From positions 178,708,057 to 178,772,056 of the forward strand of contig NC_092374.1 of assembly GCF_030028105.1 (NCBI RefSeq): DNA of 64,000 nt, given 5' to 3'. A model generated the notes under the pieces. The model was given only the letters and a program-made list of their open reading frames with translations. It searched no databases and was not told the origin of the DNA. A program made the position numbers and the translations under genes. Within the stretch, counting starts at the first letter, position 1. Every line of letters starts with the position of its first letter. Of the stretch, positions 1,160-46,396 are shown in pieces. The stretch is from Mobula birostris (Eukaryota).

Positions 1160-1235
1160 ATGGAGAGTTGGAACGGACCGGGATCGCTCCTTTTCACCAT
1201 ATTGTCTCTTTGCTCAGTTGCGGGAAGCCAGGCAG
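1160..1235 (+). pseudogene. Locus A leader exon MESWNGPGSLLFTILSLCSVAGSQA(G)
   Basis: Intact ATG, 76 nt as in locus B, phase-1 donor CAG|GTAAGG. Confidence 0.85.
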
Positions 1236-1609
1236 GTAAGGCGAGGGTGCGTGATGATTTTAAAGGTCTGGAGTTGCGTTTTGGAAACTCACCCCTAATC
1301 TTCTAGAGATCCCAGACGTGCCCCCATTAGAATGGAGAACTGGTGCATCGCATTCATGTGTCCTACAGAGGAAATCCAAGATGCTGGGGAATTTCTGGAG
1401 TCTGTAAGTTCGGGATAAAATTATCACTGAAAATGTTCAAGTGGCGTTTGAGATCTGTCGCGGGTTCCAAAAGATCTTTTTTCTCTGTGAAGTTTAATGG
1501 CAGTAGGCAGGCCAACATAAGGTGCATTACCGCCACCAACTGAGTTGGAGTGTGGAGTGAAGAGACAGGAATTATATTCACGAAATCACACCCCCCACCC
1601 CGCCACCCC

Positions 1610-1610
<1 letters not shown>

Positions 1611-1672
<62 letters not shown>
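1611..1672. repeat. (AC)31 microsatellite
   Basis: Directly visible perfect dinucleotide run. Confidence 0.97.
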
Positions 1673-1673
<1 letters not shown>

Positions 1674-3009: not shown

Positions 3010-3595
3010 ATAATAATAAGTACTTTATTGATTCCAAGAGGGGAAATCTATCATTACAGTAGCAGCATTTAAAAACACACAGCAGTGTGCAGACTAACTA
3101 ACAATAACGTACAGCATAATAACATACCAATGTTCAATAAAATGCAATAATAATGTATGAAATAATAAAGCAGGGACTAATGTACTAGGATGCGTGTTCT
3201 GTCGCAATGAGATGAATTGTTGTATATGCTTATTGCATTTGGTAGGAAAGATTTTCTGTAACAATCCTTATGACGGCAGAGCTGAATGAGTCTATTCAAA
3301 AAGGTGCTTCGCTACTTATTCCGTAGGTAATGGAGAGGATGTGCCAGATTGTCCATAATGGATAGCAGTTTGTTTCATGACCTCCTCTCCACCATTTAGT
3401 CAAAAGAGTCTGGACTGTAGCCAAGGACGGATCCAGCCTTTTTGATGAGTTTATTTAGTCTTTTTGCATCACCAGCTCCAATGCTGCTCCCCCAACGAAA
3501 AGCAGCAAAGAAGACTTGCTACAACAGACTGGCAAAAGATGTCCAATATCCTGCTACACACGTTGAAGTATCTCAGCTTCCCTAAATTTCAACCA
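3010..3595 (-). mobile_element. Rex1/Babar-like LINE 3' fragment
   Basis: Remnant reading FNVCSRILDIFCQSVVAS ... KRLNKLIKKAG, ending in AATAAAGTAC and a (TTA)-type tail. Confidence 0.6.
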
Positions 3596-4083
3596 CAATT
3601 GACTCATAAACAACCCCAAACCCCAAAAGTCTACTGTATATGCTATCCCAGTTTTGGCAAATGTAGCCACTCCTCCATTGCCCATTTTCCGATCATGGCT
3701 AATGTTAACATAACTTTGTATTTTGAAACTTAAAGAATTTCAACTAGGTTTCCTATACACATGACGTCAGGTTTATTTGGTAAATCTTCAATAAATTTCT
3801 TAACCTCTTGACCACTAGCTAACAGGCTTCTAAAATTCCATTGTAAGATTAAAAAGTCATTAACAACTCTCCTTTGAAATGTGAGCATTTTTACTCCTTG
3901 AAAGAGATCATTAATAGCTTCTAGTATTTAATGTCAATGTTTTTCTTCTGCTTTTCACATAATTTTAATATTTGTCCTATTTCAGTTTGTGCTGTACAAT
4001 TTACCACATCTGCCATGAAAGTTTATCAACAATCAGAGAGTCCTTGGTTATACAATTATGCACTTTACACAATGCCATTAAAC

Positions 4084-8092: not shown

Positions 8093-8981
8093 TATGTGTT
8101 AAATAAGGCTTCATTTTAAAAATATTTTATTTGCTTTATTCACTCGTGGACGTGGATTCACAAAGTGAACCACTGTTTAATTCCCCAACCCAAGATGTCC
8201 TTGAGAAGGTGGCTGGTTGCTGCCTTTTTGACCTGGTGCTGTACTCGAGCTGTGGATATATCCACAATGGTGTTCAGGTCCAGATAGTACTAAGTCTATG
8301 CTCTCTCAATTTTGGACAAGCCCTCAGGTAGTCAGTGTCAAGAGTTGTTGCTACATCCTCACAGCACAGAAGCAGGCACTTAGACCCAACAGGTCTACGT
8401 CAGCCAAGATTACCATCCAACTTGGCTCATTTGACTCATATCCCTCTAAACATTTCCTATCTGTGTACCTATCCAAGCATCTTCAATGATGGTACCCAAG
8501 TTGCTCAATAGTTTGGAGGATTGAGAACCTTCATTTTCCATCCCCACTGCAGTTGGGTTCTTCTATCCAGAGCTGCTTGGGATTTATTCCTGGCTGATGC
8601 AATGAGGCCTGTTTTAGTGGTGGTGGTTCCACGTGGATGGGGAGCCAATCACTGGGGTGAGGTCAGTGTCTAATCTGTGTGCCTGTGCATTAATTTGGGC
8701 AAGTGGAGAGTTTTCCACCAGACCTTTGAGTTGTGCCTTATAAACGGAGGGCATCCTTAGTTATTTTCTCACACTCCTCTCTCACTCTCTTCTTTTGTTC
8801 AGTCTCCCTTGAGCTGGGGAGATGATTTCGGGCAGGATAGTGATTAATGGTGAGGTAGGTCCTGGTCTGAGGCAGGAAAGAGTAAGAATCCCACTCTAGG
8901 ACACTGTAACTTCCATTTGTAATGGTAAGATAATATAAGTTTGTGTTGACTTAGTGACGTTAATTCTTCATTCTTCCCCTG

Positions 8982-9256
8982 TTGCTCCAGAGGTTCAGGT
9001 GTTGAAAAAGAGGCCAACAGCTACTGAGGGCGAGAGTCTGTCATGCATCATCACTCCCTTCTACCCCCGTGCTATCAACGCCACTTGGCTGAGGAATGGA
9101 CAGGTTGTCTCCAAGGGCTACGAGGTGACCGTGCTACCAAACTACAATGATACATACTGGATGGAACTAGTCATTGAGCTGCAGGATAATGATACGAACA
9201 TCTATACCTGTCATGTCAAGCACAGCAGCCTGCCGGGGCACTGATGGTGCAGGGAA
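8982..9256 (+). pseudogene. Locus A alpha3 (Ig-C1) exon
   Basis: 73 of 85 aa identical to locus B alpha3 up to HSSLP. 275 nt versus 276 nt, so the 3' end is frameshifted. Confidence 0.9.
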
Positions 9257-11142: not shown

Positions 11143-11186
11143 TCGTAACAAGCAATTATGAGTTGTGGGCCAAAGAAACATAATAG
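11143..11186 (+). pseudogene. Locus A copy of the candidate alternative exon: xVTSNYELWAKET**
   Basis: Acceptor ttttctcttctttgtgttcag|TC, phase 1, 12 codons, then TAA TAG. Confidence 0.42.
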
Positions 11187-11600: not shown

Positions 11601-12540
11601 AACTGTGACTCCTCGTCATAGACCCTTACTGCACAAAAACAGGCCCATCTGCACAACTGGTCTATGCCAACCAAGATTCCTACCATGGCCCATATACTAC
11701 CAAACATTTCCTGTCTATCTACTGGTTCCAGTGATTTTTTAAAAAATGTTGTTAATGTACCTGCCAAAACCACTTTCTCTTGCATCTCCTTCCTTGTGCT
11801 GGCAACTTCTGCTTGAGAATGTTGGTCCTCAGGTCTCTATTATATTTTTCCCTAATCACCTTAAACCTTTGTCCTAAAGTTCCTGATGCCCAAATCCTGG
11901 GAAAGAGATTGTGCATTCATCCTCTCTATGCTCTTTATGATTTTATACGTTATTCTATATATCTCAACCTCTTACATTCAAGGGAAAATAATGCCAAGCT
12001 ATGCTACTTCCCCTTCTAATTCAAGTGTACCTTTCTTGGCAACATCCTTGAGAATATTTTGTACACCTTTTCCAGTTTAATGACTTCCTTCCTTTGTCAA
12101 TATGCATAAGATCACCCCATTCTCCTCAGCTCCAGTGAATAAGACATCGCCCGCACCATACATGCTTTCTTCTTCCCCCATCTTCTGCTGAGCAGAAGGT
12201 ACGAAAGCCTGAAAGCACACACTGATGATCAAGGACAGCTTCTATTTTGCTGTTATAACAGTATTGTAGAGTTCCATAGTACGGCACGTTTAACCTTTGA
12301 TGTCACGATCAACCATATTGTGGCCCTTGCTCCTTATTGTGTGCCTGCTCTCTACTTCCTCTGTAACTGTTACAAGTTGCTTTGCATTCTGTTATTTTTG
12401 CCCCTTGTATTATCTCAATGTGCAATTGTAATGCAATTATCTGTGGATGGCATGCAGTACAAAGATTTTTCAGTGTACCTTGGTACATGTGACAACAATT
12501 TAAAATAGTACCAATTTACCAATCTTTACTTGGTGAGTGG

Positions 12541-12653
12541 GAGCCGGGGAGCCTCGTGGTGCAGGTCCTTTGCTGGGGCTGATGGCGACACTTACGATGA
12601 TGATTAAAGTGGTGTAGAGGAGCAGCAAGGAGAGAGTCAAGGTTTTAATACAG
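12541..12653 (+). pseudogene. Locus A tail exon GAGEPRGAGPLLGLMATLTMMIKVV*
   Basis: 113 nt as in locus B, TAG at 12615-12617 in the same position, donor CAG|GTGAGT intact, acceptor mutated to GG. Confidence 0.8.
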
Positions 12654-18099: not shown

Positions 18100-20830
18100 T
18101 AATCATAGAGTCATGGAGAAGTACAGCATAGAAACAGGCCCTTCAGCCCATCTAGTCCATGCCAAAACCATTTAAACTGCCTATTCCAGTTGACCTACTC
18201 CGGGACCATAGCCCTCCATATCCCTACTCTCCATGTACCTATCCATACTTCTGTTAAGCATTGAAATTGAGCTTGCATGAACCACTTGTGTCGGAAGCTC
18301 ATTCCACACTCTCACAATGCCCTGGGTGAAGAACTTTCTCCTCGTGTTCCTCTTAAACTTCTCACCTGTCACTCTTAAGCCAGGTGTAGTACCACCCAAC
18401 CTCAGTGGAAAAGAAAGCCTGTTTGTATTTACCCTATCTATGCCCCTCGTAATTTTGTATACCTCTATCAAATCTCCTCTCAGTCTTCTACATTCTAAAG
18501 AATACATTCCTAACATATTTAATCTTTCCTTATAACTCAGGTCCTCTTACCCTCCCCCTCCCCCTTACTCTTGTAGATTTTATCTTTCAACCTTGTTTAT
18601 GTCTTTCCTGTAGGTACTTGATTATTTGATTAAAACTACACACAATGCTCCATATTAGGCCTCTCCAACATTTCATACAACTTCAAAATAACATCCCATC
18701 TTCTGTACTCAATACCTTGATTTATGAAGGTCAACATGCCAAAACCTTCCTTTACAGCCCCATCTACATGGAATACCACTTTCCAAGAATAATAGACCTG
18801 TATTCCCAGATCTCTTTTTTCCTAACACACTTGTCCGTGCCCTACCATTGACTGTGTAAGACCTACCCTGGCTAGCCCAGCCAAAGTGAAACACCTCACA
18901 CTTCTCTCCGCTAAATTGCATCTGCCATTTTTCAGCCCACTTTTCCAGCTGATGCAGATCTGTCTGCAAGCCATGATAACCTTCCTCACTGTCCACTACA
19001 CCCCAAGCCTTGGTATCATCCACAAATTTGCTGATCCAGTTAACTACATTATCATCCAGATCATTGATATAGATGACAAACAACAAAGGACCCAGCACTG
19101 ATCCCTGCAGAACACCACTAGTCACAGGCCTCCAGTCAGAGGGGCAATTGTCTGCCACTGCTCTCTGGCTTCTCCTACAAAGTCAATGACTAATCCAATT
19201 TACTACCTCATCCTGAATACTGAGCAAGTGAAGCTACTAGGCGTGAAGCCATGCCAACTATCCTTAATTATTCTATGTCTATCAAAATACTTGTATACCC
19301 AGTCCCTTAAAATACCTTCCAATAACTTTTCCACAACTGATGTCAAACTCACCGACCTATAGTTTCCTTGTTTCTATTTATAGCCTTTTTTAAACAGCAG
19401 AAAAAACATTGGCTATCCTCCAGTCCTCTGGTACCTCTCCTGTTGTTAAGGAGGTTTAAAATATCTCAGCTAGGGCCCTGGCAAGTTCTGCACTTCCCTC
19501 CTATAGGGTCTGAGCGAATATCTTGTAAGACCCTGGGATTATATACACACTGATTTCCCTCAGGGTAGCAAACACCTCTTCCTCTATAACCTGCAAAGGG
19601 TCTGTGAAGTTGATGCTGCTTTGCCTCACTTCTATTGACTCTGTGTCTGTCTTCCGAGTAAATACAGATGCAAAGAATGTATTGAAGATCTCCCTCATCT
19701 GTTTCAGCTCCACACATGGATTACTATTCTCGTCTTCCAGAGGACCAATGTTGTCCCTTGCAATCCTTTTGCTCTTAACATATCTATAGAATCCTTCACG
19801 ATTCTCCTTCACCTTCTCTGCTTGAGCAACTTCATGTTTTCTTTTAGCCTTCCCAATTTCTTTCTTGAGTGTTCTCTTGCATTTCTTGTACTCCATAAGC
19901 ACCTCATTTGTTCCTCCCTGCCTGTGCCTGCTGGACACCTTTTTTCTCTTAACCAGAGCCTCAATATTTCTTGAAAACCAAGGTTCCCTGCACTTGTTAT
20001 CTTTACCATTTATATGACAAGTACGTACAAGCTTTGTACTCTCAAAATTTGTTTTTGAAGGCCTCTCACTTTCCAAGTACACCTTTGCCAGAAAACAGCA
20101 AGTCACAATCCACACTACCAGATTCTCCCTTATACCATCAAAATTAGCCTTTCTCCAATTTAGAATCTCAGCCCGTGGACTAGACCTTTGTTTTTGCATA
20201 TTTACCTTGAAAGTAATGGCATTATGGGCATTGGATGCAAAATGTTGCCCTATACAAACTTATGTCACCTGCCCTGTATCATTCCCTAACAGCAGATCCA
20301 GTATCCATAAGACCATAAGACACAAGAGCAGAATTTGGCCATCTGGTCCATCAAGTCTTCTCTGACATTCAATCATGGTTGATTATTTTTTTCTTCTCCT
20401 CCTCAACCCCAGTTCATGGCTTTCTCCCTGTAACCTTTGACGCCATGTCCAATCAACATCCTATCAATCTCTACCTTAAGTACACCCAATGACCCAGCCT
20501 CCACAGCTGCATGTGGCAACCAATTCCACAAATTCACCACCCTTTGAGGGGAATAGCCACAGGGGTGCTCTGCTCTAACTGCCTATTTCCATTTCTACTA
20601 ACAGTCACCCAGCTATTCACCTCCTGCAGGGTAACTACTTCCCTGTAACTTTGATCAGTTATGTTCTCACTCTCCCGTACAAGCCAAAGGTCATCTAGTT
20701 GCTGCTCCAGATCCCTAACACGGTCTTGAAGGAGCTGCAGGCAGATGCATTTCATGCAGATGTAGATCTCCAGGAGATTCTGGGTCTCCCAGTTCTCCAA
20801 CATCTGGCACGAAGAGGGCATCACAGCCAT
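18100..20830 (-). mobile_element. CR1 LINE, degenerate ORF1/ORF2
   Basis: WRPVTSGVLQGSVLGPLLFVIYINDLDDNVVNWISKFVDDTK (RT), LNWRKANFDGIRE and a CR1 ORF1 zinc-finger-like piece. Confidence 0.9.
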
Positions 20831-27109: not shown

Positions 27110-27727
27110 TCAGAAGTGGAGAGAATGAGCAATTTCAAGTTCCTGGGTGTCAACATCTCTGAGGATGCAGCTATAAAGAAGCCAAGACAGCAGTATATTT
27201 CATTGGGAGGTTGAGGTGATTTTGTTGGTCAACTAAAACACTTGAGAACTTCTACAAATGTACGATGGAGAACATTCTGACTGGCTGCATCACCATCTGT
27301 TATGAGGGACTACTGGACAAGATTGAAATAAATTGCAGAAACTTGTAAAATTAGTCAGATCTATCAGGGGTACCAGCCTCCATAGTATCCAAAATATCTT
27401 CAAGGAGCGATGCCTTAGGAAGGCTACATCCACCACCACCCAGGACATGCCCTCTTCACACTGGAGCCATCAGGAAGGAGGCACAGAAGCCTTGGCACAG
27501 CTTCTTCCCCTCTGCCAGCTGATTTATCAATGGACATTGAACCCATGAACACCACTTCCTACTTCTTTTATTTCTGTTATCTTGCACTACTTAGTTTAAC
27601 TTACAGCCATAAATATACTTTACGTAACTCAGTTTTTTATTTATTGTCAATTTCATTGTACTGCTGCCGTAAAGTTAACAAATCTCACGAACTATGCCAG
27701 TGATATTAAATCTGATTCTGATTCTAA
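27110..27727 (+). mobile_element. Rex1/Babar-like 3' fragment inside the locus B 3'UTR
   Basis: KERCLRKA-like remnant and a TCTGATTCTGATTCT tail; absent from the aligned locus A UTR. Confidence 0.7.
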
Positions 27728-27910
27728 GCTTGCTGAGGTGTGCGGTCACTCATCAAAAAAACCTGTTTGAAGCTGCACCCTGTGTTCAGAACTGTGCTTG
27801 AGTTAGAGCCAAATGCTGATCTGCAAAGGAGAAAAGAGAGGAGATTGAATGTACAGTCTAATACTGTGACAGCAAGCAGGTTTAACAAAGGCATCTGTAC
27901 GTTTACCCAC

Positions 27911-28023
27911 CTCCAGTGACGCTTTGGTTCTCTCCTTGCTGCACCTCTACATCACTCCAAAGATTATCGCAAACACAGTCATCAGCCCCAACATAGGACC
28001 TGCACCATGGGGCTCACCAACTC
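27911..28023 (-). CDS. Locus B exon 5, C-terminal tail GVGEPHGAGPMLGLMTVFAIIFGVM* plus 36 nt of 3'UTR
   Basis: Acceptor gaacag|GA GTT, TAG at 27949-27947, donor GAG|GTGGGT. Colinear and indel-free against 12541-12653. Confidence 0.8.
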
Positions 28024-31000
28024 CTGTTCACCAAGTAAAGATGGGTAAATTTATAAATTATTTTATTATTGTCACCAGTTACCAGGTACAGTGGAAATAC
28101 ATGTTTTGCATTCTGTCCATACAAATCACTACATCAGGATATTAAGGTTGTACAAGGGAAAATAATAACAGAATGCAGAGTAATGTATTAATTTTACAGA
28201 GGATGTGTGGTGCTGGCTGGCAATAGGATGCAAGACCATTAAAAGTTAGATTGTGAGGTCAGATGCCTATCTTACTATGTTTGGGTCCACTCAATTTTCT
28301 CACAGGAGAAAGACAGAAGTGTTCATTGATCATAGCAGTACATGCCTTCAGGCTTTTGTATCTGTGCCTGATGGGAGCTGGGAGAAGCGGGGGTGGGGGA
28401 GGGGTGGGTGCCGGGGAGGGTAGTCCTGGGTGGGTAGTATCTTATATATTGGAGGATAGGAGAATGGAAGGTGTTTTGAGGAAGGAAGGATGTCATTAGG
28501 ATGGAAAGGATGCAGAGGAGATTCACAAGGATGGTGCCAGGAATGGAATGCTTGAGAAATAAGGAGAGACAAGATAGGCTGGGATTATTTTCCCTGGAGT
28601 GTAGGCGGCTGAATTATAGAGAGAGGTATATAAAATTTTGAGGGGCATAGAGAGAGTGCACAGTAATTTTTCTGGGCTCCTGATGGTATAGGTTTAAGTT
28701 AAGAGAGAAAAGATGTAACAGGAACCTGATGGTCAATTTATGTGTGCCAGAAGAAGTGGTTGAGGCAGACAAGTTAGCATCTTTTAAAAGGTACATCCAC
28801 CAGTACATGGGTCTAAAGGGTTTATGGAGATACGGGCCAGGATAAATGGGACTTCTTTGAACGGGAATCTTGATTGACAAAGGCGTGTTGGGCTGAAGGG
28901 CCTATTTCTCTGCTGCAGAATTCTACGAGTCTATGACAATCAAACACCCAACAGCCAGGCAGTGACCACTTGACAGTCAGGTCTTCCCCACAGTCCCAAT
29001 TGCTTCTTAGCTGTTCTTTCTATTGAGTTCTTACTATATTTCTTTGACCAACTGCTCAACTGCTTCTGTAACATCTGGTGAGCAGAAGGAACAGATTTAA
29101 TTCGAGTGATAATAGAGCACAGTAAATAATAACTTCCAAAATGGAAATAGGATATGTTCTTGGAATTAAGAAATTTTCAGAGGTGTGTGAGAAGGAGTGG
29201 GGCTACTTGAGCAAGTCATTCAAAGTAGAGGACAAGGTGGTGAAGATAGCCTACAGGATGCTGGATTTCATTGATCAGGGCATAGAATTCAAGAGAAGGG
29301 AACTTATGGTGCAGCTTTATGGTGGAGATTCTTGATTAGGTCTTTCAAAGAGGTAAATAGGGTGGTGAAGGAAGTGTATGAGATACCAATTATCAGTGCA
29401 TAGAATACAAGGGCATGGGAATTATGGTACAGCTTTATAAAACATCGGTGAGGCTACATTCTGAGTATTGTTTACAGTTCTGGTCACCAGAGCAGAGGAG
29501 AGATGTGATTGCATTGGACAGAGTGCGGAGGAGATTCGCCGGAATGTGTCTCAGATGAAATGGGAAGAGAGAATAGATACGCTGGTTTTGTTTTCCTTAG
29601 ATGGGAGGACACTGAGAGTGGACCTGATGGAGTTATACAGAATTATTAGGGGTGTAGATAGGAAACACATAGAAAATGCTGGAAGAATTTTTTAAAATAT
29701 ATGTTATTTCTGTTATTGCACTATTTTAAAATCTGTTCAATATACATATATATAATTACTGTAGTTGATTTACTTACTTGTTTTATATTTTTTCTACATT
29801 ATCATGCATTGCTTTGTTTTGCTGCTGCTAAGTTAACAATTTTCACAACAGATGCCAGCAACAATAAACCTGATTCTGATTCTGAAGAATGCTACAGGTT
29901 TTACTTGCTGCAGTTTATGCTTCCACTTCATGTGTTTGCTTGAACGGTAGTAAACAATGACCTACCTCCCTTCACCATCATGACCTCTGGCAGGCTGCTG
30001 TGCTCGACATGACAAGCATAGATGTTCATATCATTATCCTGCAGCTCAATGACTAGTTCCATCCAGTATGTATCATTGTAGTTTGGTAGCACAGTCACCT
30101 TGTAGCCCTCAGAGACAACCTGTCCATTCTTCAGCCAAGTAGCGTTGATAGCTCGGGGATAGAAGGGCGTGATGATGCACGACAGACTCTCGCCTTCAGT
30201 AGCTGTTGGCCTCCTTGTCAACACATGAGCCTTTGGAGTAACTGGGGAAGAATCAAAAATTATGTCACCACCTCAACACAGGCTGATGATACCTTACCGT
30301 TACAGACTGAAGTTACAGTGTTCAATGTTGGGATTACTCTCACATCCTTCACTGCCTCAGAATGTGATCTGCCTCACTATTACACTCACCATCTAATCTG
30401 AAATCAGCCTCCCCAACCCAAGCTCATGCAGACTACAGACAGAGATTACGTTCATTCATCGGACAGGTCCAGATCAAGGTCACAGGCACTGTTCCCAGTC
30501 CAACTGTCATGCAATATCCCAAATTCAGATCATCCTCAAACTGCAAGATGGAGAATGCCCTCAGCACAGCAGTGGTGATCAGAAGGTCCCTCACTGCCCC
30601 AGACCGGGAGATCAGTCAATGTCTCCATTTGGGAGCACCCTCACTCAAAGATTCAAAGTAGATTAATTACCAAAGTGTTTATACAGAATACAACTCTGAG
30701 GTTTATCCTCCGATGCAGCAAAGGAACAAAGAGGCACCAAGGAACCCGTTCAAAGAAAACATCAAACACCCAACATGCAGAGAGAGAACAGATTGCACAA
30801 ACAGCAAAAAGTGAGCTAGCAACACAGAGGATATCAAACATCCAAGCAGGGGTATTTTTGTTCTTAATTGTCCATTCCTTATCTGTTAGGGCATCATAGT
30901 GTAGTGAGAATGACTCCAGGGGCAGTGTCTCATACTGTGTGTGAGATGTGAGTATTCTGGGAGACGTGCAGTCTCTCGGATAAACACATCTGCACCAGGT

Positions 31001-34000: not shown

Positions 34001-37000
34001 ATTATAACATTATGGTGGCACAGGCAATAAACAGACAAATATCTGTGGCGTGTAAGAATGGAACAGCGGTTATCATGGGGGACTTTAACTTGGGTATAGA
34101 TTGGGTGAATCAAGTTGATGAAGGCAGTCTTAAGGTGGATTTGATAGAATGCATCCATGATGGCTTTCTTGAACAGCATGTCACTAAACCTACAAATCTT
34201 AGATCTGGTCCTGTGCAATGATCAGGTAAAATAAGTGATCTTGTAGTTAGGGATCCTCCTGGAGAGAGTGATCACAGTGTGATTGAGTTTCTCGTACAAA
34301 TGGAGGGCGCAATAGTTCGATAGAAAACTAGTGTATTACTGTATGCCTAAACAGTGGAGACGACAATGGGATGAGGGAGGATTTGGCTTGTGTAGACTGG
34401 GAACACAGACTATATGGTGGGACGGTTGAGGAACAGTGGAAGACTTTAAAAGAGATTTTTCACGGTGTTCAACAGAAGTATATTCCAGTTAAAAGTGGGG
34501 AGCAAGTAAATAAGCAAGGGTGGGAAATGAAAGAAAGCATCAAACTAAAAGCTCGTTTGTACAAACTTGTCAAGAGTAGTGGGAAAATGCTAGATTGAGA
34601 AAACTTTAAAAAGCAACATAGAACCACTAAGCGAGCAGTGAAGGAAGGGAAGATAGACTATGAAAATAAACTAGCACAAAATATAAAAGCAGATCATAAA
34701 AGTTGTTATAATTATATAAAGCAGAAAAGGGTGGCTTAAGTGAACATTGGTCCCTTGGAAGACGAGAAGGGGAATTAATATTGGGGAGTGAGGAAATGGC
34801 AGAGGCTTTAGATCTATGTTGTGTCGGTCTTCACAGTGGAGGTGGCGGGCACGTCTAACATGCCAAAGACAGATGTTATGGACGCAATGGGAGGCAAGAA
34901 CCTGATACAATAGCTATCACTAAAGAGGTAGTGCTGAGCAATCGTGTGGGCCGGAAGATAGATAAGTCCCAGGGTACTGAAAGAAATGGCAGAAGTTATA
35001 GTAGAGGTTTTGGTGATAATTTACCAAAATAGAACAATAGAGTTGGGGCTAATGTATTAGCATGGATAGAGGATTGGTTGACTAATAGAAAGAAGAGAGT
35101 TGGGATACTTGGGTGTTTCTCTGGTTGGCAGTCAGTGGTGAGTGGTGTGCCATTGGAGTCTGTGCTAGGGCTGCAACTGTTCATGATATACATTAACGAT
35201 CTGGGAGGGTTTCTGAGTGTAGTGTATCTAAGTTTTCATAAGGTATGGAAGCATCCGGAACCTTGTCAATAACATCTAAGCAGGAACTCCTGACTCCTGA
35301 AAACTGCTGAATTGCATGTATTTTAAGGTGTAAAAGACCATGCTTGTGCTCACTTTAGCAGAGTCTTTTAGTGGGCTCTCCATGGTCATGTAAGTAAGTA
35401 ATTAAACTGAATACTGGGGTCTTTGTCCTTGTTTAATCAGCAATAGTAAATTTCTGTGACACTCAGAGTAGAGGGGCATCCTTTTAAAAAGGAGATCAGG
35501 AAATATTTCTTGAGCCAGAGAGCAGTACATATGTGGAATTCGTTGTTACAGGCAACTTGGCAGCTGTGGAGGCCACATCTTTAGTATATTTAAAGCAAAG
35601 ATTGATAGATTCTTTATAGTCACGACATGAAGCGATATGGGGAGAAGGCAGGACGTTGGAGCTGTGAGGGATAATGGACCAGCATGATGAAATGGCGGAG
35701 CAGACTCGATGGGCCAAATGGCCCCATTCTGCTTCTATATCTTATGGTTTTATCAAGTCTAGATGTACTCAGTTTAGTTCAGTGCCTTGCCACTAGCCAA
35801 AAGCAGGCCGCAGATTCAGTCTTCGCTGAAGCACCCAGTGCGCACTGATGCACCCTGATCAAACCACTTAGAAACAGGAAACAAAGGGAAACCAGAATCC
35901 AGAAATACATGAACCCTAAAGTCCCCCAAAAAGAGTCACAACCATGAGCCTCACCAATCAACCCCTGCAATGTGGAACCCAAGCCTCCTGCACTTTCCTC
36001 CAACAGCAGCTAGTAAAAGGGGGAGGAATACCAGCCAAACGCGGCAGATGGCGCCAAACACCAGCCTGGCCTCCGCACTTGGCCTCGTCCACTTCAACCT
36101 TGCTCAACGCCTCAGTCAGAGAGAAGCAATGGAGCCAATCATGGGCTCATAGTCCACCTCCAGGCCTGTAGGCCGTACACTCCAATCAACTCACTGTTTC
36201 AAATTAGGAGATCCCTCATTACTGCAGATTGGAACCCCCTAACCATTTTGTTTTGGGAGCTCCCTCTCTTTCCCATATGAGGAGATCCCTCTGCATCTCT
36301 GATTGGAAGCTTCCTTACTGTCCAGACCTGGAGATCCCTCTCTGTCCCAGATTGGGAACACCATCAATTTGTTAGATCATCAAATCCTTCAGTATCCTGA
36401 ATCATAACAGCCCACACCATCTCGGTCTCAGAGCCCCATAATCGTCTCAGACTGAGGTATCCTTTATGTTGCTGAATTGGGAGTTCCCTCTCCATCACAG
36501 GATGTTCCACTTGCCTTGCCTTTCCAATGCTTCTTTTCCAAGCTGAACAGCCCTTTGCAAATACCAAGTGCAGTTATTCTTCAATGCAGTCACGCCAGTG
36601 AAACTGAGTTGGCTCAATTGATCATTGAACATTGCTAGGAAACCAGTGCCAGTGCATTTCAATGTGTTCAAATCACAGCTGAACTCTCCAATATCCGGGA
36701 CGTTGATTTTCAGAATCGCGTTGACCGTATCTCCAGATTGTGTGCAGCCCCAGAGTGCCTGTATGTAGCTGAAGCCTGTAAATTACCAACAGATTAATTA
36801 ACATTAATGGCTGAAGCTTCCAATACTAGCTAATGGTCTGCTAAATACGTAAATGCTATGTGACTAAGAGGTGCACAAAGTAGTGGGTCACGGTCAGCGA
36901 CTGTGTACAGTTAAGGCCGAGAGCATGGGGTGAAGTGTCCTATATAGAACATTTGTCAGTGTGTGGCACAGATCACAGGGTCTGGTGGAATCAGTAATCA

Positions 37001-40000
37001 ATGTGAGCAACTGTCTACACGGCAAGGTGGGAGGGGAAAGTTTAAAGAGATTCAATTTGTCATTAACGAATGGCAATGTTTCCCAATGTGCAGTGAAAAG
37101 CATTCGGATTGGTTACATCACAGCCGGTAAGTAAACTCCAAAGCTCTGAAAGACAAAAGGCTGCAGGGGTGCTGGGCTCAACCAGGCCCATCACAGGTAC
37201 AGCTCTCCCCATCGTTGAGGACATCTGCGAAAGGCAATTTCCCAAAAAGACAACATCCATCATCAGGAGCCACACCCTCCCTATCATCCAGGACATACTC
37301 TCTTCTTGATGCTACCACTAGGAAGGAGGGACAGAGGCCAAAGGACCAACACCTCAGGCTCCAACAAGAGCTCCATGCCCAATACCACCAGGTTCTTTAA
37401 CCAACCAGAAAAGCCTTAACGAGACCCTAGATTATATTCTTCGCTCTTAATCTTGCACAAATATTGTTACATTTATTTTGTTGTATACCTTTTTCCAATT
37501 TCCAATTAACCAATTTCCCCCGGGATCAATAAAGTATGATTACTACTACTAGAACTACGACTACTACTACTACTACTGCTACGACTACTACTACTTTGTA
37601 CATGTGCGGGTTGTACATATTTATTTAAAATTGACTCCATGCTAACATGTCCTGTAATATACCATGCTGCTGCTGTAAGATAGTAATTTTATGGCATTTG
37701 TACCCTGTGTATGTCAGCCTATGTTCAGAAATGAACTTGAGCTTGAACTTATGCGGAGTGCACAGTACAGAGATCACGTTGAAACACTGTGCAGTGCACA
37801 GTACTCTACATACAAAGCAGGGGGCACATTGAAGGACTCTGTCGACATGTGGGTCGGAGCAGGGGCTCACAGTGAGAGACTGCGCTGTACAGTCTGCGCT
37901 GAACCACGTCCACTGCAGAGAGTTACGGCGGAGAATTGTGAAAGCAACGTGTTTGTATTCAGTGTCAATAAGCACAGAGTGTGCAACACAGCAGTTCTGG
38001 TCACTCTGTGACGGTGAGGCTTTGGAGTAGGTGCAGAAGATGCTTACCAGATGCTGCCTGGATTAGACAGCATGTGCAATAACAAGTGATTTGACCAATT
38101 TGGGCTGCTTTCTCTGTTTCAAAGTTGACAGCTGGTATAATTTTACCCTCAGTTGAAATGTCTAATACAAGAGGGCATGGAAAAGGGGATATGTTCAATG
38201 GAGATGTGCAGGGTAAGTCTATTACAGAATGGCGGGTTCCTAAATTGTGCTTCCAGGGGTTGTGGTAGTAGCAGATACAAAGAAGGTGTTCAAGAAGCTT
38301 AGGCGAGCAGGACATGGACATTGTGTAGGCAGAAAGGATGAGATTAGTTTGGCATTTGATTATTAATACAATTAGTTCAGCAGAACATTTTGGGCCAAAG
38401 GGCCTGTTCCTGTGTTGTAGCGTTCTATGTTCTAATGCACAGAGTCCCCGCACCAAATTAGATCTGGAAAGCGTCATTGTGGCAGGTGACTAGATAAGAA
38501 CATGGACATCTTAGTTCCAACCATCCTAGACTGAAGCATCCCCAAGTCTGGAGTTGGGGAGTAGGCTTAGGATTAGGTTTTGAGCCAGGCAAAGCCTGTA
38601 TGGACAGTGGGTTTGATTTTCACTGTTTCTCTGAAGAGCTCATTGGGGAATGAGGACTGGATAATCAGTTTATTTTGAAGGGTCAGAACTTACCCAGATG
38701 ATTAGGATGGAATTCTTGTAATTGGAGTTAAGGAAGGTAGAGAGCAGAATGGAGATTTGAGAGATTTGAAAGAGTGAAGGACTTTAAACTTGATACAACA
38801 TAATCAGATTTAATAGAACATCAAAATATTGGCAATACGCAAGTCACTGTGATACTCAAAGGGTAGTGGAGATCAAAGACACTCAATACCGAATAAGGAT
38901 AATTGCTTCAGATATGTCGAGAGGAGCTCATGAAGCCGATCGGTTATTTCTTTCTGTTCTTTCCAGTAGTCGGTCGATAAGCCATCTGCGATCCACTGGT
39001 ACTTGACTTCTACTTCATGCAGTGTGCTGTCATAGTAGTCTATCTGCAAGTCATCGAGCATCCCAATCCTGAAGAAAGCTGGCATTTCAGGAATACTGAT
39101 GGATTGGAGGTAGTAATACATCAAGCTGTGTGAGCCTGAGTAAAAGGACAGAGAGAGAGGAGTGTCAGAAAACAACAAAGGATGCTCACAATTTATAAGG
39201 CACAACTCGGGAGTTTGATGACATACTCGCCACTTGAATGGATTAATACACATCCAAACAGACATCCTACTGGATCAGGCAGCACTCCCACCCCTCTTTA
39301 TTAGCTCCCCAAACACGAGCAACCAACACTATGAAAACTTGCTTCACTGCTCTGGCTATTTACAAAATCCTAAGCAGATACTCACTGAAGCCAATCCAAC
39401 AGAACGACCCAAACCCCAGCACGAAGGAGGTCAAGGGCAGCAGGGAAACAGGAGCACCAACTCCCACTATAGGGTTGCTTCTAAGTCAGAGGCAAACATA
39501 CTGGAACATAAGTCCACCATGATAGAGAGGAAACCAAGGTTCAAGGAGAAGCAGAAGACATTTCCGGGGCACCAGTGTAGAAATTCTCATCATCGCAGCA
39601 AAGGTGACAGAGAAAGAGGACGGAAAAGGGGTAGTGGAGTCCCACAAGAGGCAGAGTGGGAGGACGAAAAGTAAAGATAGCTGTTGGAGTCTGTAGGTTG
39701 AAAGGACATTTGTGAATGTAGTGAGGGTAGGAAAGACTTAGATATGCCTTGTGTAAGGAGGAGAAAAGGCTAAGAATTGGGAGCAAGGAAAATAATAATT
39801 TCCAGTTCTGTCTGAATGTGGGGAGCAGCACCAATGCAGTGATCAATGTCAAAGGAAAGGAGCTGAGTGATGTAGCCCAAGTGGGACTGAAAGTTAGCAG
39901 TCATTTCAAGAGGACTAGAATATAAAAGCAAATGTGTAATGTTCAGATTTCATGAAGCACTGGTGAGGCCTCATATGGAGTATTGTGAGCAATTCTGGGC

Positions 40001-43000
40001 CCCTTAGGAAGGATGTGCTGAAACTGGAGAGGGTTCAAAGAAGGTTCATGAAAATGATTCCAGGATTGAAAGCTTTGTCACATAAAGAGCATTTGTTGGT
40101 TCTGCGTCTGTATTCACTAGAATTCAGAAAAATGAGGTGGGACCTATTTGAAACCGGTCAAATTGTGAAAGCCCTTTATAGAGTGAATGTGGAGAGGATG
40201 TTTTCTATGGTGGGAGAGTTGAAGACCAGAGGACACAGTTTCAGAATAGAGGGGTGTCCATTTAGAACAGAGATGAGGAGGAATTTTTTTTAGCCTGAGA
40301 ATGGTGAATCTGTGGGATCCTTTGCCACAGGCAACTTAGCAGCAGTGGAGGCTAAGCCGTTATGTATATTTACAGCAGAGATTGAGAGATTCTTGACTGG
40401 TCAGGACATGGAGGGATACAGGGAGAAGGCAACAGATTGGAGCTGAGAGTAAAATTGGATGAAATGGCAGAGCCAACTTGATAGGCCAAATGGCCTAATT
40501 CTGCTCCTATATCTTATGGTCTTATGGTAACAAGACTGTTCCAGGTATCCAAGTGCAGAAGAGATTTTCCAGAATGCTTCCTGGATTAGAGGACATAAGA
40601 ATTGAACTGAATTGAATTGAATTGACTTTATTACTTACATCCTTCATATACAAGAGGAGTGAAAATCTTTACATTATGTCTCCGTTCAAGTGTGCAATGT
40701 AGAATTGTAGTAATTTATAATAAATATTATGTACAACAGGATAGTCAATATAACATAGAAATACAGTTGCATCAGCATGAACTAAGCAGTCTGATGGAAG
40801 AAGCTGTCCTGGAGCCTGTTGGTCCTGGCTCTTATGCTACAGTACCATTTCCCAGATGATAGCTGCCTGAACAGTTTGTGGTTGGGTTGACTCGGGTCTC
40901 CAATGATCCTTCAGACCCTTTTTACATACCTGTCCTTGTAAATATCCTCAATAGCGGGAAGATCACATCTGCAGATGTGCAGGGCTGTCCTCATCACTCT
41001 CTGCCGAGTCCTGCGATTAAGGGAAGTACAGTTCCCGTACCAGGAAATGATACAGCCAGTCATGATGCTCTCATTCGTGCCCCTGTAGAAAGTTCTTAGA
41101 ATTTGGAGAGGGGCCATACCAAACTTGTTCAACCGTCTGAGGTGAAGGAGATGCTGTTGTGCCTTTTTCACCACACAGCTGGTATGTTCAGACCATTTGA
41201 GATCCTCGGTGATGTGTATGCGGAGGAGGAGTTGTTCTCTGGAGTGACAGAAACTGAGGAAAGATCTGATAGACGTTTATAAGATTACGGGGGCATCCCA
41301 GGGTCAAGATATCTAACAGTAGAGGGCATATATTTCAAGTGAAAGGGAATAAATTCAGAGAATATTTGTAGGCCAATGTTTATTTAACAGAGTGGTAAGT
41401 GTCTGGAATCAGCTGTGAGGGCTGGTGGTGGAGGCAAATACAATAGAGGTATTTAAGAAACACTTAGAAAGGCTCATGAATTGCAGAGAATGGAAGGATA
41501 TGGACATTGGCAGAAGGGTTAAGATTAGTTAGGCATTTAGTTACCGGTTTAATTAATTTGGCACAACAACTTGGGCTGAAGGGCATATCCCAGTTTTGCA
41601 CTGCCCGGTGTTGTCATCTCAGAGAAAGATATCATAGGATTCCCCTGGTTGCTCTGATTTCCTCACACACCCCAGAGATGGGTGGATTGGTGGGCTAATT
41701 GGCTGCTGTAAATCACCCCTGAGGTGTGTGTGAGTGGTGGCATCTGGGAAGGTGTTGATGCGAATGAGGGAAGAATAAGATTAGATGAGTGTAAATGGGT
41801 GGTTGATGGACCCAGGAGGACTGTACTGACTCTGCAGGAGAATCACTTTCTTTAAAATCTTGACATTACTGACTAGCTGCATCAAAACCTGGGACAGAAT
41901 CTACAATAGACAGGAATACAAGAGCTCAGAGAATGGTGGTCACAGCCTGATCCACCATGGGCACATCCTACTCCAACACTAGCAGTATCTACAGGAGGCA
42001 CTGCTTCAAGAAGGCAGCATCTACCATCAAGGATTCCCACCATTCGCATCATGCAGTCTTCTTGCTGCTACTGTCGGGCAGGAGGGACGGAAGACTGACA
42101 TCCCACAACATCAGGTTCAGCAACAGCTACTTTCCTACAGACATCAGTTCTTGAACCAACCTGCACAATCCTAACCCTGCAACAGCAATGAAACACTACA
42201 GACTGCCTCTTGCACCTTTCAGACCATAAGACATAGGAGCAGAATTAGGCTAATCAGCCCGTCGAGACTGTTACGCATTCCATCATGGCTGAATCCAGGT
42301 CCCACTCAACCCCATACACCTGCAATTCTCATCATATCATGATCAACTTCCGCCTTAAATATATGCACTGACTTGGCAGTCCGTGGCAGAGCATTCCACA
42401 GATTTAACGCTCTCTGGCTAAAATAAATTGCTGCTTACTTCTGTTCCAAAGGGCCACCCCTCAATTTTGAGGCTGTGCTCTCTAGTTCTGGATACTCCAC
42501 CACTGGAAACATCCTCTCCACATCCACCCCAACAAGTCCTTTCAACATTCAGTAGGTTTTAATGAGATCACTCCACATTTTGCTGAGCTCCAGTGAGTAC
42601 AGGTCCAAAGCTGCCAAACACTTCTCATACATTAACCTCTTCATTCCCAGAATCATCCTCCTGAACCTCCTCTGTGCTATCTCCAATGATAACACATCCT
42701 TTCTGAGATATGCGGCTCAAAACTGTTCACAATGCTTTAAGTGTGGCTTGATTAGTGTCTTATTATTATCTCCTGGCTTTTCTTGAAAGATCATGTCCAA
42801 TGCATCTGTTATCTCTTCAGCAACCTCTCTCAAGATTCTGGGACATAGTCCATCTGGCTCAGGTGACTTATCCACCTTAAGACCTTTGAAGTTGGCTAGC
42901 ATTTTTTCCTTTGTAACAGCAAAACACCCACTCCTGCTCTCTGGCACTCACGGACCTCTGGCACACTGCTAGTGTCTTCCACAGTGAAGGCAGATGCAAA

Positions 43001-46000
43001 GTACCCATTAAGTTCCTTTGCCAATTCTTTGTCCCGCATTACTACCTCACCAGCATCATATTCCAGTGGTCTAATATCAACTCTCACTTCCCCTTTACTC
43101 TTTCTATAACTGAAAAAACTTTTGGTGTCCTGCTTCATATTATTGGCTAGTCAGTCCTCATATTTCATCCTTTCCCTTCTCATAGCCTTTTTAGCTACTT
43201 TTTGTTGAATTTTAAAAGCTTCCTAATCATCCAACTTCCCTCTCACATTTGTTACCTTATATGTCCTTTCCTTGACTTGTATGCAGTCCTTAGCTTTCTT
43301 TGTCAGCCACGGTTGCCTAGCCCTGCCATTTGAGAACTTCTTCCTCTGTGGCACATATCTATCCTGCACCTTGTGAACTATCCCCAGAAACTTCAGCCAC
43401 ATCTGCTGTCATCCCCACTAGTATTCTCCTTCAATCCACCTGGGCAAGCTCCTCTCTCATGCCTCTGTAATTCCCTTTATTCCATTGCGATACTGACGCA
43501 TGTGCGTTATGCTTCTCCCTCTCAAATTGCTGCATGAATTCCATCATATTTTGATTGTCTCCTACGGAATCCTTTATGTTAAGTGCCCTGATACGATCTG
43601 GGTTATTACAGTTTATCTGGAGATGTGAACTTCCCACTATTCAGGACATTTACAAAGACAGGTGTGTAAAAAGGGCCCGAAGGATCATTAGGGACCTGAG
43701 TCACCCCAACCACAAAATGTTCCAGCTGCTACCATCTGGGAAACGGTACCACAACATGAAAGCCAGGACCAAGAGGGACAGCTTCTTGCACTCGGCCATC
43801 AGACTGCTTAATTCATGCTGGCACAACTGAATTTCTATATTGTACATAGTATTTGTTATAAATTACTATAAATTATACATTGCACCTTTAGATGGAGACG
43901 AACGTAAAGATTACGAAGGATGTAAGTAATAAAGTCAATTCAGTTCAATTCAATACACAACACTCAATCTAAGATAGCCTTCCCCTGAGTGGGCTCAAGC
44001 ACAAGCATTCTCTGACCCTATGTCACCTCTTTCTAAAGATGTAATTCCATCTCTTACCAACAGAGCCACACCACTGCCTATGCCTTTTTGCCTGTTCTTT
44101 CCTTACAAAGTATATCCCTTGATGTTGAGGTCCCAAATTTGGCCTTTTTTCAGCCACAGTTCCGTGATCCCCACAATGTCACGCAGAAAAATCTCTAATT
44201 GCACCTCGAGTTCATCCACCTTATTCCAAATACAGCACCTTCAGTCCTGCATTCTTCACCCTTTTGAATTTTGCCTCTGTGGTACAACTTAACTCTTTGC
44301 TCTGTCTGCAATTGTACCCAATCATTGGCTTGTCCTTCCTTACATACATGTTACACCCATCATCTTCTTGTAAACCTGCTGGCTCATCCTCAGCTCTATC
44401 ATCCTGGTTCCCATCCCCCTGCTATATTCATTTAAACCACTCCCAACAGCTCCAGTAAATTTGTCCACAAGAATATTGGTCCCCCTTGGATTCAAATGCA
44501 ACCCATCCCTTTTTGTAAAGGTTTCACCTGCCCCAGAAGAAGGCCCTATTATCCAGAAATCTGAATCCCTCTCCCCTGCTCCAATTCTTCAGCCACACAT
44601 TTATCTACCACCTCATTCTATTCCTATCCTCACTGTCATGTAGAACAGGCAGCAATCCTGAGATTACTACTCTTGAGGTCCTGCTCCTCAGCTTCCTTCC
44701 TAACTCCCTATATTCTTTTTTACAGGACCTCGTCCCTTTTCCTTCCTATATCATTGATACCAATATGTAATGCGGCTTCTCTCCACTCACCCTCCCTTTT
44801 CAGGATATTGTGCACACGTCCAGAAACATCTCAGACCCTGGCACCTGGGAGCCAAACTACCATCTCTGTTTTCCCTTTTTGCATCCACAGAATCACCCAT
44901 CTGTCCCCCTGCCTACAGAATCTCCTATTACTGCTGCCACCCTCTTCAGTTCCGTACCCCTCTGAGCCACAGGGCCAGACTCAGTGCCAGAGGCACGGCC
45001 ACCGTTGCTTTCCCGTATACTATTGCAACCGGGCATCTCTGATTCTGATTTTTTTTTTGCTCTGATGTCTCAATCTGCAGTAATTTTTGTTCATTGACTT
45101 GCATAAACCTTGTGTAACTGTCATTGCGTGTGCCCTGAATATGCCTGCTTGTAATGCTGCTGCAAGCAAGGTTTTCATTTTATCCATGTCTAACCATTCT
45201 TATGCATATGACAATAAATTTGACTGAACGTGACCTCTCTGAACGTTCTAAATTCCCTGTTACCTAAGGTATCTGAAACTGAGCAATATTGTTCTTCGTG
45301 ATTTATTGCTTCCATTTTTCTGCTTCCTTTTTCATGGTATTTTCTGTAAGCAGCCGGTGCAGACACAGAACACTCTCCCATAGTCTGCCATGTGTAAACA
45401 TACTGACCAACCACCCCAACACCAGAGCTTTGACGAACTCGCCACTCATGTCCACTGGCAACGGCCTCCACTTCCCGCTGCATCATTTGGCATGAGCGGT
45501 GTTAACCTGGCGATTTTACAAAACCTCCCCGAAGTCCTTGTACATAGCATGCATCAATGTTCTGCCAGTCTATTACCACAGCAATCACCAAAACTTAGAG
45601 CCAACTCTTGATGCACTTTGTAAATAGAAAGAAAAAGTTCTGACAATAGTCATCAGGCCAGGCAGTATCTGGAGAAAAGAGGAACTGTTTATGTCTCAAG
45701 TTAAAGACGGAAAGCTCCGCAGTTCCGATAGCATGCAAGGACAGAGAAACAGGGCTAATGTTTAATGACCAAGGTGGAAATCTTGCAACAGTTCGGGTAG
45801 CATCTGTTGGGAGACAAAGAATGAATGTTTCAGATTCGGGAGCCTGAGTCAGAACGTGGAATGAGAGAAATCAAGTTAGTTTTTGTTAGCAGAGAAGTCA
45901 TTCACACATAAGGCACAGAAAGAGGCCACTCGGACCACTATGTGTGTACAAACCCTAGAGGAATGGGTGGAACAGGGGTGTTTCTCTGGTATTGTGAAAC

Positions 46001-46396
46001 AGACTGAACTAACGTGGCAGTTAAGGAATAGTTAAACTCAGATTAATTGCTTTAATGTGATGCCTCTGTTAAGATTGTGGGACTTTCCTCTTTGGGAACT
46101 GGCGATAGACCCCAAACTACCCACCGCTGAAACATATTCAAGGATCATTTTGTCCCGAGTTTATCGACTTCAGAAATTTCACAAGAGTGAAATCAGAACA
46201 CAGGAGTGCGATGAGTTCGTCCTCCCGCCAAATGGAGCAACTGCCAGGAACTCCAAAAGATTTAAAGGTGAATTTCCCGACACAACCCCCGACCATCGCC
46301 GTCACATACCCTCGCCTCACCTGCCTGTTGTCCCGCGACAGAGCAGAGAGATAACGCGGTGACAAGGAGCGATACCGCTCCGGTCCAGCTCTCCAT
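27947..46396 (-). CDS. Non-classical MHC class I-like heavy chain, locus B; join of 46396-46321, 39135-38890, 36775-36515, 30241-29966, 28023-27947; 311 aa
   Basis: Five exons joined by phase-1 introns give one open frame (76+246+261+276+77 = 936 nt): signal peptide, alpha1 (GSHSLMYYY...DYWKEQ), alpha2 (WGC...NNCTWYLQRAVQLGKEALERQ), Ig-C1 alpha3, hydrophobic tail, stop. Lineage (UBA/UCA/UDA/UEA or new) cannot be assigned without a search. Confidence 0.88.
29031..29074 (-). CDS. Candidate alternative exon in locus B intron 4: (D)VTEAVEQLVKEI**
   Basis: Acceptor ttccttctgctcaccag|AT, phase 1, 12 codons then TAG TAA; overlapping donor ATA|GTAAGA. Same layout as 11143-11186. Confidence 0.45.
29966..30241 (-). 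CDS. Locus B exon 4, Ig-C1 alpha3 domain
   Basis: Acceptor ttcttccccag|TT ACT CCA; 92 codons with LSC-ITPFYP-AI--TW, VLPNYNDTY and YACHVEHSSL; donor GAG|GTAGGT. Confidence 0.93.
30880..35750 (+). mobile_element. Stacked CR1 LINE remnants (SGNH-type ORF1, endonuclease, RT) spanning most of locus B intron 3
   Basis: IAVLMGNSIGRRTETKFCGH...VVCCLP; VTIVMGNFNMQVDWENQ; GCFSGWQSVVSGVPLESVLGLQLFMIYINDL. Confidence 0.85.
36515..36775 (-). CDS. Locus B exon 3, MHC class I alpha2 domain (absent from the ORF track)
   Basis: Acceptor taattttacag|GC TTC; open 87 codons GFSYIQALWGCTQSGDTVNAILKINVPDIGEFSCDLNTLKCTGTGFLAMFNDQLSQLSFTGVTALKNNCTWYLQRAVQLGKEALERQ with C101/C164 equivalents and Q96; phase-1 donor AAG|GCAAGT. 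Confidence 0.88.
37045..37600 (+). mobile_element. Rex1/Babar-like 3' fragment with a (CTA)n tail
   Basis: RPITGTALPIVEDICERQFPKKTTSIIR-HTLP; AATAAAGTATG followed by CTA repeats. Confidence 0.7.
38890..39135 (-). CDS. Locus B exon 2, MHC class I alpha1 domain
   Basis: Acceptor ctctctgtccttttactcag|GC TCA CAC; class I alpha1 motifs SHSL-YY, G-LDD-QIDYYDS and YW. The 3' end uses the phase-1 donor TCG|GTATTG, which is weak and therefore uncertain. An in-frame TGA at 38873-38875 limits the alternatives. Confidence 0.85.
39890..40530 (+). mobile_element. CR1 LINE 3' end
   Basis: RKDVLKLERVQRRFMKMIPGL...KTRGHSFRIEGCPFRTEMRRNFF. Confidence 0.88.
40590..41220 (-). mobile_element. Rex1/Babar-like 3' fragment
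   Basis: VKKAQQHLLHLRRLNKFGM...ESIMTGCIISWYGNC; (CAATT)n tail. Confidence 0.8.
42230..44690 (-). mobile_element. CR1 LINE remnant with a nested Rex1-like fragment (about 43615-43950)
   Basis: LKVDKSPEPDGLCPRILREVAEEI; DTKSFFSYRKSK; the nested piece reads CELPTIQDIYKDRCVKRARRIIRD. Confidence 0.8.
46321..46396 (-). CDS. Locus B exon 1, leader MESWTGAVSLLVTALSLCSVAGQQA(G)
   Basis: ATG at 46396, hydrophobic signal peptide, phase-1 donor CAG|GTGAGG, and clear homology to the locus A leader at 1160-1235. Confidence 0.88.

Follow-up and report, generated by a model that had tools for sequence, protein, structure and literature searches.

A transcribed UFA-lineage MHC class I gene of Mobula birostris with an ancient stop codon and a putative GPI-signal C terminus

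When a class I-like gene stops directly after a short hydrophobic stretch, is it in decay, or does the stop belong to a functional molecule with an unusual membrane anchor? This question is raised by a 64,000-nucleotide stretch of the Mobula birostris genome (NCBI RefSeq assembly GCF_030028105.1, contig NC_092374.1, positions 178,708,057 to 178,772,056 of the forward strand; hereafter the window, with coordinates counted from its first nucleotide). [quoted passage not shown] The original prediction took them for a non-classical class I pair, lacking cytoplasmic tails, that might switch between a lipid-anchored surface ligand and a soluble or decoy form. We find that locus B is a functional gene, transcribed and spliced as predicted, and that locus A is a dead fragment. 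We read the stop as a selected feature and the protein as probably anchored through glycosylphosphatidylinositol (GPI), and find little to suggest a secreted form from this locus.

Locus B lies on the minus strand between its start codon (46414 or 46396) and 27947. The coding part of exon 1 (46321..46414), which specifies the signal peptide (leader sequence MESWTGAVSLLVTALSLCSVAG), begins with an ATG at 46414 in the 317-residue NCBI model or at 46396 in a 311-residue reading, and ends at a donor GT at 46320. Exon 2 (38890..39135) encodes the alpha1 domain in 82 codons with a shortened C-terminal end, exon 3 (36515..36775) the alpha2 domain in 87 codons, and exon 4 (29966..30241) the immunoglobulin (Ig) C1-set alpha3 domain. 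Exon 5 (27911..28023) carries a candidate omega-site region, a spacer and a 15-residue hydrophobic end closed by TAG at 27949-27947, and exon 6 (27694..27820) belongs to the 3' untranslated region (UTR). Joined, the exons give exactly 311 residues with the C terminus ...GGVGEPHGAGPMLGLMTVFAIIFGVM (...VKGGVGEPHGAGPMLGLMTVFAIIFGVM) directly before the stop, and the model is identical to XP_072113441.1 (P0154, Mobula birostris, 317 residues from the upstream ATG). Introns are GT-AG throughout except intron 3, whose donor is a consensus GC (AAG/GCAAGT) and the only one preserving the frame. This GC donor after alpha2 (36513-36514) is kept in Mobula, Pristis, Cetorhinus and Chiloscyllium and is GT in Amblyraja; in Hemitrygon and Hypanus, NCBI models named 'isoform X2' (P0002, P0167) leave out alpha2, which may relate to the weakness of this donor.

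The product belongs to the MHC class I superfamily, with an alpha1/alpha2 MHC_I domain and a C1-set alpha3 domain. Pfam places MHC_I (PF00129) on the alpha1 exon and C1-set (PF07654) on the alpha3 exons of both loci, an AF2 (AlphaFold2) model of the locus B protein matches class I chains with Z of about 20, and the C101-C164 pair is present. An extra cysteine pair in alpha2 (C-x6-C, SCDLNTLKC; about 36690-36660) is kept from sharks to rays and lost in some Hemitrygon and Hypanus paralogs, and may form a lineage-specific disulfide.

RNA data bear out the predicted splicing. Eight runs contain the 3' part of locus B, from two organisms: organism A, whose contigs match locus B with 0-1 mismatches and which is therefore the same species, and organism B, a related species. 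Contigs from the same species contain the junctions 29966>28023 and 27911>27820, so that locus B transcripts are spliced as the original prediction had proposed, and exon 6 is joined to exon 5 in all runs. One same-species contig of 1059 nt comprises exon 6, exon 5 and alpha3 plus 545 nt upstream, which would correspond to alpha2, alpha1 and 38 nt of exon 1, or nearly the whole coding sequence. Runs from organism B hold a homolog 92-96% identical, with far deeper coverage and the same two junctions. Only in these related-species runs is the GC-donor junction represented, by an unaligned contig end at 30243 that reads ...GGAAAGGCA(AG)TTACT. Organism B also has V>M at 27955, as in M. hypostoma P0155 (...AIIFGMM), and NCBI M. 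hypostoma proteins ending ...FGMM and ...FGVM suggest that its transcripts carry the TAG as well. The locus B mRNA comprises six exons, with the TAG within exon 5, 36 nt 5' of the exon 5/6 junction. As contigs of like depth extend downstream of exon 6, the 3'UTR is probably longer than 27694..27820. Spikes in the depth of RNA contigs, at 26.2-27.7 kb and 28.4-28.7 kb, derive from repeats of the long interspersed nuclear element (LINE) type.

Relatives gathered by a search with the alpha3 exon, and then by searches with full-length relatives, form a family of about 30 proteins of 305-321 residues from at least 16 shark and ray species. Ray members come from Mobula birostris, M. hypostoma, Hemitrygon akajei, Hypanus sabinus, Pristis pectinata, Amblyraja radiata and Narcine bancroftii, and shark members from Cetorhinus, Carcharodon, Mustelus, Pristiophorus, Heterodontus, Chiloscyllium, Scyliorhinus, Heptranchias and Ginglymostoma. 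The closest solved relative is nurse-shark UFA (PDB 8GM8, 'Crystal structure of shark nonclassical MHC class I, UFA'; phmmer E 2.4e-64, about 40% identity), followed by UGA (9CH4, titled 'UGA'; 1e-31), with the remaining structures at 1e-25 or weaker. A maximum-likelihood tree groups 27 proteins from sharks and rays, 8GM8 among them, in a single clade (support 100/100) within which sharks and rays separate; a UGA-like protein and other class I sequences fall outside it. These comparisons place locus B in the UFA lineage of elasmobranchs, a known group of non-classical MHC class I genes, and NCBI has already annotated the gene. UFA has been described as a lipid-binding class Ib lineage of sharks and rays, CD1-like and linked to the MHC (PMC10751288, unpublished data; PMC12562908, personal communication), and in Pristis the ortholog (L004; NC_067438.1, 13.25-13.27 Mb) is flanked by genes that the supplement of PMC10751288 labels MHC-Ib. 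Protein language-model neighbours of the locus B protein fall in CD1a/CD1b-like clusters, with MILL2 clusters also among them.

The lineage is also multi-copy in mantas and stingrays, where two sublineages hold at least 5-6 intact genes and there are pseudogenes besides, whereas one gene per shark species was found. At least five intact genes are present in M. birostris (P0151, P0153, P0154, P0157 and P0158) and at least six in Hemitrygon akajei (P0001 and P0159-P0163), unlike the single- or low-copy UFA described in the literature.

The original prediction had noted a degenerate peptide groove, and this holds as a trait of the lineage. Among the classical class I invariants checked (Y7, Y59, Y/R84, T143, K146, W147, Y159 and Y171), only Y7 and Y59 of the residues binding peptide termini are retained in the locus B protein relative to a classical-type reference, and a deletion has removed the region of position 84. 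Locus B has F, Q, L, A and A at positions 143, 146, 147, 159 and 171, where nurse-shark UFA has L, M, I, L and V. The protein is not of the classical peptide-presenting type. Its groove fits a hydrophobic ligand rather than decay, and the hydrophobic substitutions are consistent with a lipid ligand for the locus B protein. Nurse-shark UFA shares with it the shortened alpha1, the C-x6-C pair of alpha2 and the hydrophobic replacement of peptide-binding invariants.

The stop after the hydrophobic stretch, noted from the outset in both copies, recurs across the family. A TAG stands at the homologous codon in six genomic loci (Mobula B, Mobula A, Pristis, Amblyraja, Cetorhinus and Chiloscyllium), each with a CAG/GTGAGT-type donor 36-42 nt 3' of it. 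Because six independent shark and ray loci have it at the homologous position, the shared stop is not chance; it therefore predates the divergence of sharks and rays, and the exon 5/6 intron has persisted within the 3'UTR. Some 30 proteins from sharks and rays, full-length shark UFA orthologs among them, end as locus B does, straight after a hydrophobic stretch of 14-16 residues. Full-length exceptions are two Narcine alternative isoforms (X2, X3) and one fragmentary Scyliorhinus model; further exceptions are the alpha3-truncated Mobula A-type models P0003, P0164 and P0187. From this distribution we regard the stop as a selected feature and not decay, and the tail-less end as a trait of the whole UFA lineage that is not peculiar to this locus.

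The contrary view, in which a disabling nonsense mutation created the stop and A and B are both decaying pseudogenes, can point to locus A, which is clearly dead, and to the in-frame relic of a basic cytoplasmic start that follows the stop in rays. It is refuted for locus B by conservation, since about 30 proteins of sharks and rays, representing at least 16 species, keep both the stop and an intact hydrophobic tail; additionally, the locus B open reading frame (ORF) is intact and transcribed, and the structure of the nurse-shark ortholog (PDB 8GM8) shows a folded molecule with a groove for ligand. We consider this view of the pair almost certainly wrong, and locus B was rejected as a pseudogene on the cross-species conservation of its stop and tail.

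Locus A, on the plus strand, is a pseudogene, the dead fragment of a second UFA sublineage. Its leader exon (1160..1235) resembles that of locus B and is 92% identical to the intact paralog P0151, which lies elsewhere on the chromosome and which the tree places in a sublineage different from that of locus B. In the segment 8674..9268 the last 127 nt of intron 1 abut the last 180 nt of intron 3, with alpha1 and alpha2 deleted, and are followed by the alpha3 exon (8981-9238), in which the acceptor AG is mutated and a 1-bp deletion near the end (9230-9247) causes a frameshift to ...SSLPGH and a stop. The exon 5 homolog (12538..12653) has lost its acceptor AG as well, and retains a TAG (12615-12617) preceded by a tail, ...LLGLMATLTMMIKVV, that is 100% identical to P0151; overall, the remaining exons show 92-100% protein identity to that paralog. 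NCBI models a 109-residue leader plus alpha3 product from the locus (P0003, XP_072113440.1). The M. hypostoma protein P0187 has the same ...GH terminus, and its first Ig cysteine is gone as well; as this end is common to both, decay began before the two Mobula species split. The frameshift is common to the M. hypostoma models P0187 and P0164, which retain alpha1 and alpha2 and would encode an anchor-less product. Because A has lost alpha1, alpha2 and two splice acceptors and its alpha3 is frameshifted, A and B are not a working pair, and the idea of a two-gene system was abandoned.

What follows the stop bears on its origin. The 36 nt between TAG and donor in locus B (27911-27946) read RCSKERTKASLE, and the post-stop readings of the rays (RCSKERTKASLE, RSSKERVKVLIQ, GSSKEGAKASLQ and RRGAMRREARCDN) resemble the start of a cytoplasmic tail, the 36-41 nt being in-frame open and basic in all four ray loci. 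This reading is not kept in sharks, and Cetorhinus has a second stop. We interpret the post-stop 36 nt as a relic of a cytoplasmic stop-transfer sequence, marking what would be the ancestral transmembrane/cytoplasmic boundary. Between locus B and Pristis, identity is 81% over these 36 nt, compared with 77% for the coding part and 63-67% for flanking introns, conservation that we attribute to exon and splicing constraints. A conserved readthrough ORF after the TAG is not supported, given the second stop in Cetorhinus and a frame into exon 6 that differs between Mobula and Amblyraja, though the conservation of the post-stop 36 nt leaves it a low probability. The base following TAG is A, G or T, never C. 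That occasional readthrough in rays might add the conserved basic stretch, and so yield a transmembrane form from the same mRNA, appears highly improbable.

An intron within roughly 50 nt after a stop spares an mRNA from nonsense-mediated decay. The exon 5/6 intron lies within that distance of the stop in all six loci, and their transcripts should escape this decay.

The next question is how the protein is held at the membrane. The claim of a GPI-signal-type C terminus without a cytoplasmic tail survives as a description of the sequence: the locus B protein has an N-terminal signal peptide and a terminal hydrophobic segment within the 12-20 residues typical of such signals, no cytoplasmic residues, and a tail, PMLGLMTVFAIIFGVM, that runs directly into the stop. 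Upstream of the hydrophobic end, rays have G-V-G then EPHGAGP and lamniform sharks G-V-S then ETIHSGP, a candidate omega site and polar spacer of ~7 residues; the rule of thumb applied calls for small residues at omega and omega+2 and a polar spacer of 5-10 residues. Insertion energy was computed as a position-independent sum on the Hessa scale over the best C-terminal 19-mer. By this approximate measure, 25 family members have a median of +2.5 kcal/mol (range -0.45 to +5.8) and the locus B tail +2.1 kcal/mol, a marginal hydrophobicity, compared with -1.3 to -3.9 kcal/mol for four ordinary class I transmembrane segments, that of a UGA-like protein included. GPI signals are marginally hydrophobic at the extreme C terminus. 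On these features, the C terminus rather probably acts as a GPI-attachment signal.

The main alternative is a tail-less type I transmembrane anchor, in which the uncharged run spans the bilayer and no GPI anchor is attached. In its favour, AF2 models residues 304-316 as a helix, and the length of the uncharged run and the energies of the skate tails, both given below, would suit it. Set against this are a median insertion energy well above the clearly negative values of real class I transmembrane segments, the lack of a flanking basic residue on the cytoplasmic side, the presence of K, R or E in the last four residues of several members, and the conserved small-residue site and polar spacer upstream. 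We judge such an anchor unlikely.

The explanation that we prefer, and consider probable as a whole, joins a functional UFA gene, an ancient nonsense codon, a GPI-type end and a relic 3'UTR. A nonsense codon would have arisen in an old transmembrane exon before the shark-ray split and been retained since, and what was once the cytoplasmic part of exon 5, together with the exon after it, would survive as spliced 3'UTR, whose intron 36 nt after the stop should protect the mRNA from nonsense-mediated decay. A lipid anchor would then hold UFA in the outer membrane leaflet, and UFA would have no counterpart of the tyrosine-based tail that CD1b, CD1c and CD1d use for endosomal sorting. The wider proposition, that the whole UFA lineage is GPI-anchored through one ancient nonsense mutation and that its former cytoplasmic exons have become a 3'UTR safe from nonsense-mediated decay, is more doubtful, and we offer it tentatively.

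Several points weigh against the preferred explanation. The omega-site assignment follows rules of thumb, and the hydrophobicity scale values are approximate. The uncharged C-terminal run of 16-21 residues (19 in the locus B protein, up to 21 in skates) is compatible with a tail-less membrane span, two skate sequences have insertion energies near 0 kcal/mol, and the aligned omega position is R in Chiloscyllium, which fits the rule poorly. Same-species contigs contain one mismatch somewhere in exon 5, so that the TAG is presumed in the RNA itself. Putative lipid binding is taken from the unpublished data and personal communication in PMC10751288 and PMC12562908 and from the PDB title.

Could locus B also yield a soluble protein? 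The original prediction envisaged an alternative exon, and as sequence this exists in both copies: an alternative 3' splice site in intron 4 of locus B (29031..29074, minus strand) opens 13 codons followed by TAG TAA, and locus A has a counterpart at 11143-11186, in phase 1, with 13 codons and then two stops in each copy. A regulated exon here (29074-29031) would replace the anchor and release soluble alpha1-alpha3, switching between anchored and secreted or decoy forms. Consistent with this, a canonical GT-AG junction, 29966>29074, occurs at the predicted acceptor in one contig of run X2, from the related species. Its depth, though, is 8.9 compared with 2133 for the main junction (about 0.4%), it appears in one of five runs, and the low-depth contig continues unspliced through the remaining intron, with a depth like that of pre-mRNA. 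A and B share a block here that is otherwise 82% identical; its coding part is the stretch conserved least, less than the surrounding intron, and at the Pristis site an 8-nt indel is found and the tandem stops are absent. The stop would also lie far upstream of later junctions, so that the mRNA is likely a target of nonsense-mediated decay. With poor conservation between the copies, the Pristis indel and a trace junction, we rejected a conserved alternative coding exon; the site is most likely a cryptic splice site and the junction noise, and the switch is very unlikely.

Soluble forms may nonetheless exist somewhere in the UFA family. Three NCBI isoforms of Narcine bancroftii (P0166, P0180 and P0181) differ only after alpha3, one having the hydrophobic tail and two having short hydrophilic ends in its place. 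These two lend the idea of a switch some encouragement, but their ends are unrelated in sequence to the alternative exon of Mobula.

The remaining shared feature of the two loci is a putative promoter-proximal block of about 45 nt with a CACCC/GC box, 30-75 nt upstream of the ATG in both (46429..46473 on the minus strand in locus B, 1084-1129 in locus A). The shared element of the original prediction is thus present, and it is common to Pristis and Amblyraja as well; no alignment with shark sequences was obtained. As a class I regulatory element it fares less well: a search for an interferon-stimulated response element (ISRE), kappaB sites and the SXY module (X/Y boxes) within 600 nt upstream found none, except one distal kappaB-like match. 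The window otherwise contains LINE fragments only. These reverse transcriptase/endonuclease fragments (Pfam RVT_1, Exo_endo_phos_2) occupy much of the space between and beside both loci, at 18181-20199 (minus strand) and 60519-62831 (plus strand), and also at 40911-41276 and 42896-43150.

Comparison with known systems helps to place the tail-less end. In mice, the class Ib molecule Qa-2 (H2-Q7/Q9) is GPI-linked by a premature stop in its transmembrane exon, and soluble forms arise by alternative splicing. It is the closest mechanistic parallel to the UFA tail stop, but belongs to an unrelated lineage, reflects a recent rodent event and binds peptides, whereas the UFA stop predates the shark-ray split and accompanies a hydrophobic groove. 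The mammalian ligands ULBP/RAET1 and MILL likewise carry a class I-like ectodomain on a GPI anchor; ULBPs lack alpha3 and beta2-microglobulin and are NKG2D stress ligands, a role for which the present data give no indication in UFA. The CD1 family of mammals, birds and reptiles resembles UFA in its class I-like form, its alpha3 of the beta2-microglobulin type and its hydrophobic groove, and NCBI names one member of the UFA family 'CD1d-like', but CD1 proteins have a true transmembrane segment and, with the exception of CD1a, a YXXZ motif for endosomal sorting on the cytoplasmic side, whereas UFA has no cytoplasmic residues; the resemblance need not reflect orthology. Within elasmobranchs, shark UGA (9CH4) represents a second CD1-like lineage, and the UGA-like protein P0143, outside the UFA clade, has an ordinary 22-residue transmembrane segment and a 31-residue cytoplasmic tail. 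The crystallised 8GM8 construct ends after alpha3 and is uninformative on the anchor.

These results bear on what is new here. The original prediction knew of no such description in cartilaginous fish. In fact the gene is already annotated and its lineage is named, CD1-like and represented by a crystal structure, so that one of the grounds for refutation set out in the original prediction applies in part; a description of the UFA tail, or a citation of 8GM8, was not found in the literature searched, with the primary UFA paper and the relevant thesis outside that search. A possible novelty is therefore the tail-less GPI-type end as an ancient hallmark of the whole lineage. The notions of a pair and of a secreted exon should not be built upon. 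In contrast, the relic coding exon, kept with a 3'UTR intron inside the distance that is safe from nonsense-mediated decay, is a clean example of its kind, and the sequences document an expansion of UFA genes in stingrays and mantas.

CD1 proteins reach lipid antigens by means of sorting motifs in their cytoplasmic tails. If UFA has been GPI-anchored since before the shark-ray split, early lipid presentation would have operated without endosomal targeting, more in the manner of CD1a or of raft-resident ligands. In that case the oldest lipid-presenting class I molecule known would be held by a lipid anchor itself and would have no tail for endosomal sorting, a testable point for studies of UFA structure and of the innate-like T cells of cartilaginous fish.

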